From contig NC_042998.1 of NCBI RefSeq assembly GCF_006345805.1, positions 133,858,001 through 133,922,000 of the forward strand: a DNA stretch of 64,000 bases, written 5' to 3'. The DNA comes from Octopus sinensis (Eukaryota). A program made the position numbers and the translations under genes. The notes under the pieces are model-generated. The model did no database searches and had not been told where the DNA came from. It saw only the letters and a program-made list of their open reading frames with translations. Of the stretch, positions 889-63,570 are shown piece after piece (the first letter of the stretch is position 1; each line of letters starts with the position of its first letter).

Positions 889-1054
889 AATGAACTTCGC
901 CATGATACATCGCTAGCCACTACACATTATTTTCTCTCCTTGTTTCTCTCTGTGTTCCTTTCTGTGGAAGAGCGTAGATTCGAAACGTTAAAGACTATTT
1001 TCACTTCCCGAGCGTTATACTAATACATCTGTTTGTTGTCTACACTACCTGTCT
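889..1054 (+). mobile_element. Short dispersed repeat, family E (hammerhead-like, Penelope-type non-autonomous element)
   Basis: Homologous to the reverse complements of 29275-29462 and 46775-46968; follows an (AT)n tract. Confidence 0.8.
958..993 (+). ncRNA. Minimal type I hammerhead-like motif, variant core (CUGUGGAA)
   Basis: CTTT-CTGTGGAA-GAG cgtaga TTC-GAAA-CG-TT-AAAG: stem I CTTT/AAAG, palindromic ACGT stem III; A6 replaced by U. Confidence 0.55.
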
Positions 1055-1234
1055 CTTAAGGCTGTCCTTAAGAGAGATGCCAAAGAATTGTTTATCCATT
1101 ACTGAAGCTTTACCTGGCATAAGTGCTTATAGTAGCGAGAAATTGAGGTTATAAGAGATAATGGTGTCCTTGTGACCAAAAGGTGTCGAGAGAGAGAGAG
1201 AGAGAGAGAGAGAGAGAGAGAGAGAGAGAGAGAG

Positions 1235-1659
1235 ATGTAAGGCCCAAGGATCAAATGTAGGAAGAAAGTCAGCTTCAAGCAATCGGTAGAAAATATTAAA
1301 AAATAACTTTCAAGAATAATAGTGGTTTATTGGTGCGGAAGGTTATGAACTTATCGAAGTGCGATAAGCTGAAAAAATTTATTTTATACTTCGCGGTTGG
1401 CAGCCTGGGTTGCCAGGTATGTGAATAAAAATCCAAGAGTTAAGGAGTAGATAATATGCGGACTGCACATATTAACACACGGAGGATTCGATCAGAAAGA
1501 TCCTTACGACAAAGTAAACTTCATATAACCAAGATACCTTTGGCCTGAAGAGTAGCCTGCGGAATACATCTTGCTTGGGTATTTACCACTTTCACGGTTC
1601 CGCTCGCTATGAAACATATGTAGCCCTCATATCATCTGTTCCGTTCCTTAACTCTTGAA
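1235..1659 (+). mobile_element. Hammerhead-bearing element with an inverted copy of its 3' tail upstream
   Basis: 1432-1458 is the reverse complement (with a deletion) of 1628-1659. 1235-1458 is also the reverse-complement homologue of 17010-17225. Confidence 0.7.
1533..1633 (+). ncRNA. Type I hammerhead ribozyme with long stem II
   Basis: GGC-CTGAAGA(1545-1551)-GTAGC..GCGGAA...TTCCGC..GCTAT-GAAA(1611-1614)-CATATG-TA|GCC. Stem I is GGC/GCC plus GATA/TATC after an internal loop; stem III is the palindrome ACATATGT; GUA site after 1622; G10.1-U11.1 wobble. Confidence 0.8.
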
Positions 1660-1970
1660 TATATATATATATATATATAATCCGTAATAATGAAGGGTGA
1701 AATTAATTAATTTGGAATAATTATCAATTACACCAAGTAGTCTTCGGCATGTAAAAGCCTCATTCGAGGAAAATTTAAGTAATACTAAGCAATAAAGGGT
1801 TTAGCAACGAATTGCCTTACCACATACCGAATTTAGAAATAGCAGTCAAAGAGTTATAGCTATTTCTTCTACTAAAAAGGGAGATCTCAGTAAAAACAGC
1901 AATCGGAAGGCAGACACAAACAGGTAAGAGAGAATGAATTGACGGCAATCTATCATACAATTTTAAGTTA

Positions 1971-2070
1971 TCTACGGACGCACGTTTCGAAATCAAGTTT
2001 TTAGGAAAGCATAAGAATTAAATATTAAATAATTCTACCTTACCAAAACTTCTTTTCTCTTCAGCGTAGA
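1971..2070 (-). ncRNA. Type I hammerhead ribozyme, intact core (copy 1)
   Basis: Minus strand: TCTACG-CTGAAGA-GAAA.AAGTTTT.GG..GAATTA..TAATTC..CC.AAAACTT.TTTC-GAAA-CGTGCG-TC|CGTAGA. Perfect 6-bp stem I, 69-nt stem II, GUC site between 1977 and 1976. Confidence 0.92.
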
Positions 2071-2562
2071 ATACTATAATCATAAATGATTATATATTGA
2101 ATTTTGAGATACTAGAACGCACCAACTCAACTCAGTATCAGAGCGAGCTAGAATCCGCAACTAGTATCACCAAATTCAATGTGTGAATGAAAAGATTGTG
2201 TCACCAGCCCCTTCCCACCCGCGTGTAGCCAAAACAAGATGCTGTGGTCATCTACTGAGATAAAATATGGTTATCCGTAATAATGAAGGGTGAAATTAAT
2301 TAATTTGGAATAATTATCAATTACACCAAGTAGTCTTCGGCATGTAAAAGCCTCATTCGAGGAAAATTTAAGTAATACTAAGCAATAAAGGGTTAGCAAC
2401 GAATTGCCTTACCACATACCGAATTTAGAAATAGCAGTCAAAGAGTTATAGCTATTTCTTCTACTAAAAAGGGAGATCTCAGTAAAAACAGCAATTGGAA
2501 GGCAGACACAAACAGGTAAGAGAGAATGAATTGACGGCAATCTATCATACAATTTTAAGTTA

Positions 2563-2660
2563 TCTACGGACGCACGTTTCGAAATCAAGTTTTTAGGAAA
2601 GCATAAGAATTAAATATTAAATAATTCTACCTTACCAAAACTTTTTCTCTTCAGCGTAGA
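2563..2660 (-). ncRNA. Type I hammerhead ribozyme, intact core (copy 2)
   Basis: Same motif as 1971-2070; predicted cleavage between 2569 and 2568. Confidence 0.92.
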
Positions 2661-60825: not shown

Positions 60826-61040
60826 TAGGCGCGTGGCTTAGTGGTTAGGGTGTCAGCATCATGATCGTAAGATTGTGGCTTCGATTCCTGGACCGAGTAA
60901 CGCGTTGTGTTCTTGAGCAAAACACTTCATTTCACGTTGCTCCAGTCCACTCAGCTGGCAAAAATGAGTAACGCTGCGTCGGACTGGCGTCCCGTCCAGC
61001 TGGGGAGCACATACGCCATAGAAACCGGAAAACCGGGCCC
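60826..61040 (+). mobile_element. SINE family C head with a V-SINE-like 3' domain
   Basis: GGCGCGTGGCTTAGTGG A-box-like and GCTTCGATTCC B-box-like motifs; GGACTGGCGTCCCGTCCAG resembles the V-domain (from memory). Confidence 0.8.
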
Positions 61041-61869
61041 ATGAGCCTGCCTATGCTTTAAAATATCGCATTTATTTTTATTTTATATCACAGTATGCAT
61101 TGTCCTAATCTATACCTTTTTTTATCTAATGATAAGATGGATTTGAGGGGGATTTAGCTGCTATTTCAAACAAGTCTAATGATCGCATCGAGGTTGTTTT
61201 AACATTGATAGTGTATGTTTACATGGTGCAGAGTTTGGGAAAATAGAAATAGTTTGGTAGGGAATTTATCAAGTGTGTGAAGTGTGGTATTCGATACACA
61301 TCAAGCGGTGAACATGGAAGCCTTCTCCAAAAAATGTTGTTTACTAAAGCATTATGGTTAAGAATATTGTATAGGAGAATTTCATAATCTTGAAGGGAAC
61401 ATTTTTGGCAATGATGTAAAAGGGAAACCTACAGTTTATTTATTTATTTATTTTAGGTGTGGTTTATTTTTTGGAAAGAGTTTACAGACATAATTTTCGG
61501 ATGACAGACTGTCTTACAGGTGTTGCGATGATGAGAGCGCCTAAAAGAGTTGTAAAGACTGAACTCTCCGACGTCGATGATTTCAGAGAGGAATGATGAG
61601 AAGCAGATGTTCTTGATGCCGGGCGTGAGATAGCTGAAGTGTCGTTAGTGATTAATGAAATCACGAGACTGATAAAGGCAATAGCTGAGTTTAAGGGTGT
61701 GAAAAAAGGAGACTTTGACCCAGAAATTTGATTACAGTACTTTTAACTCCCACATCATCTTTCTGTTTTGGCAAAAGTAATAGGAATTCTGCGAAAGTTA
61801 CTTGGGATATAAAAGACTCCATGGATATATATATATATATATATATATATATATATATATATATATATA

Positions 61870-62167
61870 TTGGGTTGTCCGGAAAGTTCGTGCCGATTTA
61901 TAGTAGCTTAACTTTCGACTTATTTTAGAACATGGTTGAGTCCATAAAATAGGATTTGACTACACCTCCATTTAGAGCACAGATTAAGCTATCTTTTCGT
62001 GGAAGAAGGTTTATGTTCCTATAACCTGTGTTAATTCTGTAACCCTTTACAATGGAAGATAAGAAAGTTGATTTTCGGCACTTGATGCTTTGGGAACCAG
62101 ACAAGAATTGCTGCAGCTCGGCTGGATGTGTTACCACACTCTCCATATTCACCAGATATTGCTCCTT
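61870..62167 (+). mobile_element. Internally deleted mariner transposon (left TIR plus transposase pieces)
   Basis: TA followed by TTGGGTTGTCCGGAAAGTTCGTGCCGATTT; MEDKKVDFRHLMLWE fused to LLQLG(W)xVLPHSPYSPDIAP (YSPDLAP motif). Confidence 0.85.
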
Positions 62168-62400
62168 TAACAACTGATGAAGGGTCGTTCTTTATGTTAC
62201 TTGTCTTGTTTTCAAATTGTTTCTTCCGTTGTTCGCAAAAAATGTTCGTATTCCATGTTTTCATGTTTCGCATTTCATGTTGTTTTCGTATTTCATGTTG
62301 TTCATGTTTTATGACGTCATGTACCCATATATACATATGTATATACATATATATGTAAGTATGTACATATATATATGCATATGTATATTATTTATATTAT
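62168..62400 (+). mobile_element. Family D diverged copy
   Basis: CAACTGATGAAGGG start and GTACCCATATATACATATGTATATAC end. Confidence 0.7.
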
Positions 62401-63530
62401 ATATATATCTTTCTCTCTCTCTCTCTCTCTCTCTCTCTCTCTCTCTGTCTCTCTCTCTTTCTCTCTCTTTCTATTGTCCTTTATTGCTCTTCCTTCACTT
62501 AATTTTACATTACTCATATATACATACATATATATATATATATATATATGATGCATGTATGTATATACTTGTATATACATATATACATCTCTTTATTTAT
62601 ATATAACTTTACAACACGTGTGTATATGTATGCGTGTGTGTGTGTGTGTGTTTCTAATTTCAGGTACGCATTGTTTCTTCTGTTTCACACTCACACATCC
62701 AACAGCTGTTCAAGAACATAAACACACAAACACGTACACAAACATGCGTACATACACCTTTTTCTCGCACATGAACACCCTAACACTCTTACACACACAC
62801 ACACACACACACACACACACACAAAGAAGTAAAAAATATTTTTGAAATAAAGTGCACACAATAGTAATAAAACCTGAAAAACCTACCCTGACAGCTATCT
62901 CAAGTGAAGCAAGCAGACAATACCAATATCCTGACGATGTTATAACCACTCCTGATCACCTAATATACAATACAGGAAAACCGTCACGCAGAAACCAAAG
63001 ACACATAGGCATATTCACATCTGTGATTACGTTATAAGGATATGGGCTATTCTGTATGTATATGTATATATATATATATATACATATATATATATATATA
63101 TATATATATATATAATATATATATATATATTATATATACATTTACACATACACACACACACACACTAACACGCTATAGAAATCCATCCATACATAGCTAA
63201 ACTTATATGTGTGTACGTGTGCGCATGGGTGTATGAGTGTGTATGTGTGTGTTTGCACTGATCAAAACGTGCATATATAACCAAAGTTACGATGAAATTG
63301 AGTAAATATTGAGGATCGCAGGATATTCTCGACAGTGCAGTATCAATACGCCAATCACACTTACACAAACACATACATATATTAATACATATATATATAT
63401 ATATATATATATATATATATATATATATATATATATATAGATAATTAATCCAAGCAAAAAAGCACAAAAAAGCACAACAACGCGAGGACGCGGAAAAATA
63501 TAGTATTATTGGACGCTCAGGAAAGAAGGA

Positions 63531-63570
63531 ATGTTTAACGTTTCGAGCGAGAGCTCTTCGTCGGAAACAT
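63531..63570 (-). ncRNA. Minimal hammerhead-like motif (family E-related, core CCGACGAA)
   Basis: Minus strand: ATGTTT-CCGACGAA-GAGC tctc GCTC-GAAA-CG-TT|AAACAT. Confidence 0.65.

Follow-up and report, generated by a model that had tools for sequence, protein, structure and literature searches.

Minimal type I hammerhead ribozymes of Penelope-like elements (PLEs) were reported by Cervera and de la Pena (2014, PMC4209133) and are also said to have been described by Lunse, Weinberg and Breaker (RNA Biol 14:1499, as cited in PMC6765202). In metazoan genomes, PLE hammerheads have been called "massive and widespread", with many variable families per genome and mostly solitary motifs (PMC4209133). 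Retrozymes of the non-LTR kind (LTR, long terminal repeat), which are tandem type I hammerhead repeats, occur in cnidarians, in a mussel (a mollusc, with about 5000 copies) and in amphibians (Cervera & de la Pena 2020, PMC7229834). These animal retrozymes have been tied to the pseudo-long terminal repeats (pLTRs) of PLEs (Li, Clavereau & Pollet 2026 preprint, bioRxiv 10.64898/2026.07.22.740005), and PLEs are an annotated order of transposable elements in Octopus vulgaris, with 31 recently active families (PMC13282606). Here, we analysed a 64,000-nt stretch of Octopus sinensis DNA, hereafter the window (NC_042998.1, positions 133,858,001 to 133,922,000; assembly GCF_006345805.1), in which a preliminary description had reported several unrelated type I hammerhead families in non-coding, retroelement-like repeats. 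That report is borne out by an excess of motifs, by helix pairing, by surroundings that resemble PLE insertions and by the lack of any reverse transcriptase (RT) or GIY-YIG domain in the scanned open reading frames (ORFs). The novelty that it suggested was overrated, since PLE hammerheads and retrozymes were already known in metazoans, including a mollusc (PMC4209133, PMC7229834). We consider it likely that the window is Octopus intergenic or intronic DNA with relics and with non-autonomous, retrozyme-like PLE derivatives that bear type I hammerheads of the 'dimer-dependent' style.

The window motifs resemble PLE minimal hammerheads (PMC4209133) in being type I, in having a very short or absent helix III with a palindromic 15.2-16.2/loop 3 segment that implies dimers, and in falling into many sequence-unrelated families per genome whose helices covary. 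Like the PLE motifs, they occur mostly as solitary copies (read as truncated elements), and opposite-strand pairs are separated by a few hundred bp. The unpaired base between A9 and G10.1 and the G10.1-C11.1 pair of PLE motifs are matched here by family X, a non-coding element of roughly 200-255 bp with four copies in the window. Whereas PLE hammerheads reside in the pLTRs of elements that encode RT and GIY-YIG, neither such an ORF nor a pLTR pair was found in the window. Metazoan non-LTR retrozymes have a counterpart at a single locus, 1680-3006, which likewise consists of head-to-tail, low-GC, non-coding units with one type I hammerhead each; its 592-nt unit also shares with them a strongly self-paired monomer RNA and a helix III that is short (in amphibians, the retrozyme hammerhead works as a dimer). 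Retrozymes are tandem, whereas the array in the window holds only 2.24 copies and most of its motifs are solitary. Newt satellite 2 and Schistosoma Sm-alpha (PMC6765202) are also short non-coding repeats, whose processing needs at least two tandem copies and of which the newt motif is dimer-dependent; they are single dominant families with a compact helix II, in contrast to the many low-copy families and PLE-like insertions at (TA)n seen here. PLE hammerheads, dimer dependence and insertions of tandem or inverted anatomy have been described before in many metazoans, and the window reveals no new mechanism. No paper describing cephalopod hammerheads was found in the literature searched, where joint mentions concerned Naiad PLEs (without canonical hammerheads) and an unrelated twister study.

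Motif census and excess over chance

Motifs were located with a strict type I descriptor that required a minimum of 4 bp in helix I, CUGANGA, a helix II of 3 bp or more from 10.1/11.1, GAAA, an A15.1...U16.1 closure, an H17 other than G and the 3' strand of helix I. A relaxed version tolerated one unpaired base at either end of helix II and a helix I of at least 3 bp, and demanded a short helix III. The strict descriptor returned 7 loci in the window, compared with a mean of 0.06 and a maximum of 1 in 100 dinucleotide shuffles, and the relaxed descriptor returned 9 loci, again compared with 0.06. This is the shuffle control that the preliminary description had named, and it confirms that the core matches go beyond chance. 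Because real genomes are richer in hairpins than shuffles, we also ran 300 decoys with permuted CUGANGA and GAAA cores on the real window sequence, which gave a mean of 0.14-0.15 loci and a maximum of 3; permuting GAAA while keeping CUGANGA gave 0-1 loci. When up to one core mismatch was tolerated, 8 loci were found in the window and 0.78 were expected. The excess over dinucleotide shuffles and over scrambled-core decoys therefore ranges from 50-fold to above 100-fold. Public metagenomes, used as a specificity control only, yielded 31 matches to CTGAAGAG-N45-75-TGAAACATATGTA, which we take as chance: none of the 31 had both helices I and II, whereas both helices are present in the two window motifs that bear these core strings. 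Together, these controls show that the excess is specific to the hammerhead core combined with its helices.

Intact CUGANGA, GAAA and UH elements within a full type I architecture were found at nine motifs, named here by their start positions (1542, 1971, 2563, 6244, 33423, 35964, 42267, 46582 and 53341). Two more, 15658-15745 (minus strand) and 16803-16890 (plus strand), fold with the core and helices I and III intact and with the base of helix II unpaired, which brings the motifs with a type I core to 11. Helix I spans 3-6 bp and helix II 3-12 bp across the descriptor matches, and minimum free energy (MFE) folds recover the junction for most motifs. Five further motifs (958, 29372, 46865, 63531 and 13177) carry one or more substitutions at essential positions. 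Mutagenesis of hammerheads has revealed large losses of activity at core positions that are altered in several of these copies. Judged from their sequences, the core substitutions in about a third of the motifs originally listed are expected to abolish cleavage, and the family X copies and 13177 are probably catalytically dead relics.

The original list of about 14 motifs was sound for about two thirds of its entries. It was also incomplete, as it lacked two good motifs, 35964-36064 (minus strand) and 46582-46667 (plus strand). Its observation that pairing is kept even though the helices differ among families agrees with our site-by-site reading, the descriptor and the folds. Two of its half motifs, 3007 and 6680-6712, are real 5'-truncated copies; the third, 16979, is doubtful and unsupported, as direct reading found no GAAA there. 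A site at 25004-25055 (minus strand) has the core strings and a 3-bp helix II, and was returned by no descriptor run; its helix I is just 2 bp, so it is indistinguishable from chance. We also took a descriptor match at 5227-5324 (minus strand) as chance, since its helix III segment is 18 nt long and lies within a different repeat family. The chance reading is refuted for the motif set as a whole and may hold for the single weak sites 25004, 16979 and 5227-5324.

The Rfam model of type I hammerheads (RF00163, Hammerhead_1; gathering threshold 34 bits) provided a separate view when motifs were searched singly. All 45 model positions were aligned at 53341-53399 (23.0 bits, E 7e-4), at 1971-2070 (21.2 bits, E 0.0036 in a 121-nt search) and at 46582-46667 (20.2 bits, E 0.007). 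RF00163 was the best-scoring family for three of the four motifs searched alone, with boundaries equal to those of the descriptor and with correct helices I and III and core; the long helix II was treated as a local insertion. The hammerhead resemblance is thus seen independently by the Rfam model, but at 20-23 bits against 34 no motif is certified by the Rfam standard.

The 592-nt tandem unit, shared helices and insertion anatomy

The array at 1680-3006 (minus strand) consists of 2.24 head-to-tail copies of a 592/593-nt non-coding unit with one hammerhead per complete unit. Its copies (1680-2415 and 2273-3006) are 98.9% identical by self-BLAST, and the array is 34.8% G+C and lacks any ORF of at least 120 aa. 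The hammerhead of the first unit, 1971-2070 (minus strand), reads UCUACG/CUGAAGA/69-nt helix II (G10.1-C11.1)/GAAA/C-GUGC-G/UC/CGUAGA, is returned by the strict descriptor and the fold, and is predicted to cleave after C1977, between 1977 and 1976. The hammerhead of the second unit, 2563-2660 (minus strand; descriptor and fold), is the same except for a 2-nt deletion in helix II, and its predicted cleavage site, between 2569 and 2568, lies 592 nt from the first. The monomer between these sites (1977-2568, minus strand) folds at -166 kcal/mol (z = -6.7), and its MFE structure retains helices I and II.

An inverted, 5'-truncated copy of the unit follows at 3007-3268 (plus strand; inverted-repeat search and self-BLAST), with 99.6% identity. 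This copy begins within apical helix II, at the 5' end of the array, and contains only the 3' half of the hammerhead (3007-3075). The 3' end of the array abuts the (TA)n tract 1659-1678 and that of the inverted copy abuts the (TA)n tract 3268-3291, so that the whole composite, 1680-3268, sits between (TA)n tracts. Within the unit, the end of the array (1680) and that of its inverted partner (3268) are 98 nt apart. Both the different end points and the array length of more than one unit would be consistent with a template that was circular or multimeric.

A very short helix III whose loop is self-complementary (GAAAC-NNNN-GUA/GUC) is common to most motifs in the window. The 15.1-16.1 segment is fully self-complementary in 8 of the 9 relaxed matches, and the strict descriptor made no such demand. 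These segments are CAUAUG (three times), CACGUG, CGUGCG (twice) and UAUGUA (both with G.U), and UCCGGGA; the pair 15658/16803, which lies outside the descriptor returns, has CGGCCG, and the helix III region of family X is ACGU without a loop. Thus, the PLE-type combination of a 0-2-bp helix III with a palindromic 15.2-16.2/loop 3 is found in the window. Metazoan type I hammerheads and those of PLEs are marked by such a self-complementary helix III, and they are proposed to work as dimers joined by a helix III that extends between two molecules (PMC4209133; PMC7229834). Seven families have a helix II of 57-74 nt, which is unusually long. In 7 of 10 motifs, the fold of the helix II domain is an imperfect hairpin closed at its end, and z reaches -4.6. 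The pair at 10.1/11.1 is G-C in the 592-nt unit (1971 and 2563) and family X, G.U in 1542, 6244 and 46582, A-U in 33423, U-A in 35964 and A.A in 42267. The families are mostly unrelated in sequence, and sensitive BLAST linked three pairs (6244/42267, 1971/13177 and, in the 3' part only, 1542/16803).

PLE insertions are described as including partial tandem copies and, next to the upstream pLTR, an inverted copy truncated at its 5' end, with (TA)n among the preferred microsatellite targets (PMC8557442), and dual PLE hammerheads on opposite strands have been reported (PMC4209133). Arrangements of this type are found in the composite 1680-3268 and in the head-to-head copies at 15623-16922 and at about 6655-6740. 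A (TA)n tract lies 24-51 nt downstream of 4 of 10 motifs (1542, 6244, 16803 and 46582), compared with 9% of random positions (binomial ~0.01). These observations support the view that the surroundings of the elements have a PLE-style insertion anatomy.

Proposed mechanism and competing explanations

Under the published PLE and retrozyme model (PMC4209133, PMC7229834, PMC8557442, bioRxiv 10.64898/2026.07.22.740005), transcription would run through tandem or neighbouring copies, and an active dimer would arise from two hammerheads paired via the palindromic segments of helix III. Both hammerheads of the dimer would then cleave after H17, for example between ...GUC and CGUAGA in the 592-nt unit, and the RNA freed in this way would have unit length, a 5'-OH and a 2',3'-cyclic phosphate. 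A tRNA-type ligase would circularise this RNA, and a PLE RT and GIY-YIG nuclease acting in trans would copy it at nicked (TA)n microsatellites. The expected products would be tandem arrays of more than one unit, inverted copies next to them that lack their 5' part, and many solitary copies, likewise 5'-truncated, in which the 3'-proximal hammerhead is retained. For the elements of the window, cleavage by the motifs, their dependence on dimers, the formation of circular RNA and mobilisation through PLE proteins are inferred.

Several observations weigh against assigning the elements to PLE-derived, retrozyme-like hammerheads. Their helix II of 57-74 nt in seven families contrasts with the 6-8 bp of PLE motifs, and the 592 nt between cleavage sites exceeds the retrozyme monomer of about 150-450 nt. 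G10.1-C11.1, which is called highly conserved, is replaced by G.U in 1542, 6244 and 46582 and is absent in others, and the extra base between A9 and G10.1 that typifies PLE minimal motifs is absent in most window families, being present in family X only and perhaps in 42267. No Rfam family matches anywhere in the window at the gathering score. RF00163 did not match 33423 even in a 111-nt search, which makes this motif less certain, and a 1.8-kb scan of 1500-3300 returned no hammerhead; the motifs 1971 and 2563 were missed in that scan and found in a 121-nt scan, which indicates a filter effect. A Pfam search of ~9,700 residues from filtered non-repetitive ORF fragments (roughly the first 51 kb) detected neither an RT nor a GIY-YIG domain, and the sole clear RT remnant in the window (14363-15142) belongs to a CR1-like long interspersed element (LINE). 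Since PLE coding sequence was not found in the window, the PLE link rests on anatomy and the literature. An unlinked, gene-containing 20.5-kb locus of O. vulgaris (OX597823.1) gave 0 strict matches and 1 relaxed match. The window density, put at roughly one motif per 4-5 kb in the preliminary description, should not simply be extrapolated genome-wide. Finally, PLE minimal hammerheads cleave poorly in vitro (PMC4209133), and the activity of the window motifs is therefore not to be assumed.

These points leave room for other explanations. The motifs could be genuine hammerheads within repeats of the satellite or short interspersed element (SINE) type that were moved by LINEs or amplified by unequal exchange, without any link to PLEs; Schistosoma Sm-alpha and newt satellite 2 would be the precedents. 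The window does contain CR1-like LINE remnants and abundant microsatellite-tailed SINE families, the Pfam search of ORF fragments found no PLE coding sequence, and the boundaries of family X copies are consistent at both the 5' and the 3' side, as in a short, discrete element. The tandem array with its inverted 5'-truncated copy, the head-to-head pairs and the (TA)n targets are, however, a PLE signature (PMC8557442) that is atypical of LINE-mobilised SINEs. The elements also have no poly(A) or LINE-type 3' tail, and animal tandem hammerhead repeats have been tied phylogenetically to PLE pLTRs (bioRxiv 10.64898/2026.07.22.740005), so we regard an origin independent of PLEs as improbable.

A different concern is that the motifs derive from ribozymes and none is catalytically competent, either as neutral fossils or because the fold is kept for another purpose such as RT recognition. 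At least six unrelated families retain 11 of 11 core positions, A15.1-U16.1 and an allowed H17 despite fully diverged helices; the palindromic helix III is maintained through double changes; and the two intact hammerheads of the tandem array lie exactly one unit apart. We therefore find general loss of function quite improbable, even though five motifs are altered at A6, U4 or U16.1, a proximal helix II is missing from 15658 and 16803, the 10.1/11.1 position is G.U or mismatched in several motifs, no motif reaches the Rfam threshold and published PLE minimal hammerheads have low activity in vitro (PMC4209133). That short core strings matched by chance in AT-rich, hairpin-rich repetitive DNA is scarcely credible. 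The cores are short, nothing reaches the Rfam gathering score, and the microsatellites and inverted repeats that abound in the window give spurious RNA-family matches; yet the excess persists over both shuffles and scrambled cores, permuted GAAA nearly abolishes it, the core strings in unrelated metagenomes never occur with both helices, and RF00163 tops the families for three motifs searched alone. Relics and non-autonomous derivatives of PLEs remain our preferred explanation.

It is conceivable, though we think it unlikely, that the elements form a distinct octopus (perhaps cephalopod) lineage of hammerhead retroelements characterised by a 57-74-nt helix II, a G10.1.U11.1 closing pair and a UGAAAC-NNNN-GUA 3' half, and that some, such as the 592-nt unit, are active and yield unusually large circular RNAs. 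If confirmed, cephalopods would join the animals with documented Penelope-type or retrozyme hammerheads, and the elements would be a possible source of ribozyme-derived circular RNA in octopus tissues. The natural variants could inform how far the hammerhead fold tolerates a very long helix II, G.U at 10.1/11.1 and co-changing palindromic helix III loops. The long helix II and the 10.1/11.1 G.U, along with the 592-nt unit, may be of interest to ribozyme specialists.

Individual families and other repeats in the window

A degenerate relative of the 592-nt unit lies at 13177-13232 (plus strand), with CACA/UGUG, CUGAAGA, GAG...CUC, GAAA-CGCG-CA and U16.1 changed to C. Sensitive BLAST aligned this element with the 1971 element over 189 nt, and self-BLAST detected an inverted copy of the unit's 3' block upstream of it (13072-13181 and 13285-13395, 87%). 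The type I hammerhead at 1542-1625 (plus strand, relaxed descriptor; placed at 1533 in the preliminary description) has a 3-bp helix I (GGC/GCC), CUGAAGA, a 59-nt helix II closed by G.U, and GAAAC-AUAU-GUA. Its helices I and II are recovered in the MFE fold, its helix II domain has z = -2.9, and the 3' end of its element lies 34 nt downstream of the motif, at the (TA)n tract 1659-1678.

The descriptor also returned a type I hammerhead at 6244-6334 (minus strand) with (U)GCGG/CUGC(G), CUGAAGA, an 8-bp proximal helix II (GAGCUUUA/UAAAGCUU) and GAAAC-ACGU-GUA; a (TA)n tract, 6191-6206, was found 38 nt downstream. Its distant kin at 42267-42354 (plus strand; relaxed descriptor and fold) is a variant hammerhead with GCGG/CCGC, CUGAUGA, an A.A or unpaired position at 10.1/11.1 followed by GGC/GCC, and GAAAC-AUAU-GUA. 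The two elements align over 171 nt with 65% identity by sensitive BLAST; between them, loop 3 changes from ACGU to AUAU with the palindrome kept, and two helix II pairs are altered on both sides. Directly adjoining the (TA)n tract that follows the 6244 hammerhead is a near-perfect palindrome, 5804-6187, built on (ATAC)n/(GTAT)n. Its arms (5853-5997 and 5998-6142) are 96% identical without a spacer and its outer arms 98%, and the arm repeat also occurs at 5084-5314, 5621-5848, 14248-14410, 15216-15351 and 27221-27361.

Two copies of a 250-bp element lie head to head at 15623-15872 (minus strand) and 16675-16922 (plus strand), with 88.8% identity over 250 nt by self-BLAST and the hammerhead about 35 nt from the outer 3' end in each. 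The motif of the first copy, 15658-15745, has CUGACGA, GAAAC-GGCC-GUA and an unpaired proximal helix II. The motif of the second, 16803-16890, combines an intact core and GAAAC-GGCC-GUA with a helix I of 6 bp (GGUCAU/AUGACC), and a (TA)n tract (16914-16941) follows 24 nt downstream. Kin of this family form a palindrome at about 6655-6740, which on direct reading consists of two head-to-head, extremely 5'-truncated copies; each arm retains just ...GCUGAAAC-GGSC-G-YA and the 3' tail, the half motif at 6680-6712 is the palindrome centre, and a (TA)n tract is present at 6629-6644.

Both the descriptor and the MFE fold support a compact hammerhead at 33423-33469 (minus strand), with GGUGGUA/UACACC, CUGAUGA, a 5-bp helix II (AAGAG/CUCUU) with a 6-nt loop, and GAAA-UAUGUA-UA. 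The two motifs that were missing from the original list are strict-descriptor type I hammerheads whose helix II domains each have z = -4.6. The one at 35964-36064 has UUAC/GUGA, CUGAUGA, a 74-nt helix II (UGUGCA/UGCACA proximal) and GAAAC-AUUU-GUU, while the one at 46582-46667 has AUUUUC/GAAAAU, CUGAAGA, a 12-bp proximal helix II and GAAAC-AUAU-GUA, with the (TA)n tract 46718-46774 sitting 51 nt downstream. A family X copy (46754-47007) faces the latter motif across this microsatellite. The hammerhead at 53341-53399 (plus strand, relaxed descriptor) has AUUCUA/UAGAAU, CUGACGA, a 27-nt helix II with an extra A before G12, and GAAA-UCCGGGA-UC.

Among the four family X copies, the one at 860-1054 (plus strand) carries the motif 958-993 (CUUU/CUGUGGA/A/GAG-CGUAGA-UUC/GAAA/CG/UU/AAAG), which has A6 changed to U and an unpaired A between A9 and G10.1 and passes the one-mismatch descriptor. 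The copies at 29256-29460 (minus strand; motif 29372-29412, with A6 to U and a C.A mismatch at 15.2/16.2) and 46754-47007 (minus strand; motif 46865-46908, with A6 to U and U16.1 to C) each lie between two stretches of (TA)n. In the most divergent copy, 63440-63600 (minus strand; motif 63531-63570), helix I has 6 bp (AUGUUU/AAACAU), A6 is kept, U4 is changed to C, the helix II loop differs, and one helix I pair, C-G in the other copies, has become G-C by a compensatory change. Since this copy combines A6 with C4 and the other three combine U6 with U4, the family X ancestor probably had a canonical hammerhead core. A 100-N scaffold gap (63626-63725) lies just upstream of this copy, and for this reason its 5' part is missing from the assembly. 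In three copies, the 3' end lies 91-99 nt before a (TA)n tract and the start just after another.

In the alignment of the four copies, the core blocks GAAGAGC and CUCGAAAC are invariant and N7 is the sole variable core column. Pairing is found in 86% of cells compared with at most 53% in slid registers, a weak comparison with four sequences. A U3/N4 register was rejected, because the variable column falls on N7 in the CUGUNGA-A register. The ends of family X are not inverted repeats, for which reason we also rejected its classification as a terminal inverted repeat transposon or miniature inverted-repeat transposable element. Downstream of the motif, at a distance of about 15 nt, there is another conserved block, UUCCUGAGCG..AUACUAAUAC (alignment columns 165-190, e.g. 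1007-1030), which is nearly invariant across all four copies, the most divergent included. The pyrimidine-rich block 3' of the 53341 hammerhead (ctctttgttttctctctgtgtt, 53400-53470) resembles the block 5' of the family X motif (ctctccttgtttctctctgtgttc, 900-957). This resemblance hints at a longer ancestral element from which both family X and the 53341 element may derive as parts.

No ORF in the window exceeds 310 aa. The CR1-like LINE remnant at 14363-15207 retains an intact 260-aa ORF that corresponds to the C-terminal part of the RT protein, and its identity to a copy on chromosome OX597823.1 of O. vulgaris is 94% for the protein and 96% for the DNA. The preliminary description had called the host cephalopod-like, which the 94% identity to an O. 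vulgaris protein places correctly at genus level. The O. vulgaris locus has SINE and LINE families in common with the window at 80-96% identity; no further copies of the window hammerhead families were found in it, and only the flanking SINEs matched. The Rfam list for the whole window at E<=10 contains hundreds of sub-threshold miRNA matches (among them mir-3149, mir-297 and mir-466; at most 78 bits), every one of them on a (CA)n/(TA)n/(ATAC)n microsatellite (e.g. 22512-22595, 39205-39286 and 30062-30145), which look like low-complexity artefacts.

An abundant SINE family of ~200 bp, also present in the O. vulgaris locus, has 78-91% identity between copies and a tRNA-like B-box segment (...gttcaaattccgccgag...); ARAGORN called no tRNA gene in the window. 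Its copies lie at 3389-3624, 18913-19116, 28369-28572, 35530-35765, 37396-37589, 37697-37847, 40936-41311, 41875-41984 and 63726-64000. A second abundant repeat, of up to about 430 bp and with an internal or terminal (CA)n/(TA)n-type microsatellite, occurs in both orientations at 19305-20098, 29464-29644, 36714-37150, 43770-44008, 52649-53148, 54944-55351 and 56711-57140, and three times in the O. vulgaris locus. The microsatellite tails of this second repeat often adjoin hammerhead elements.

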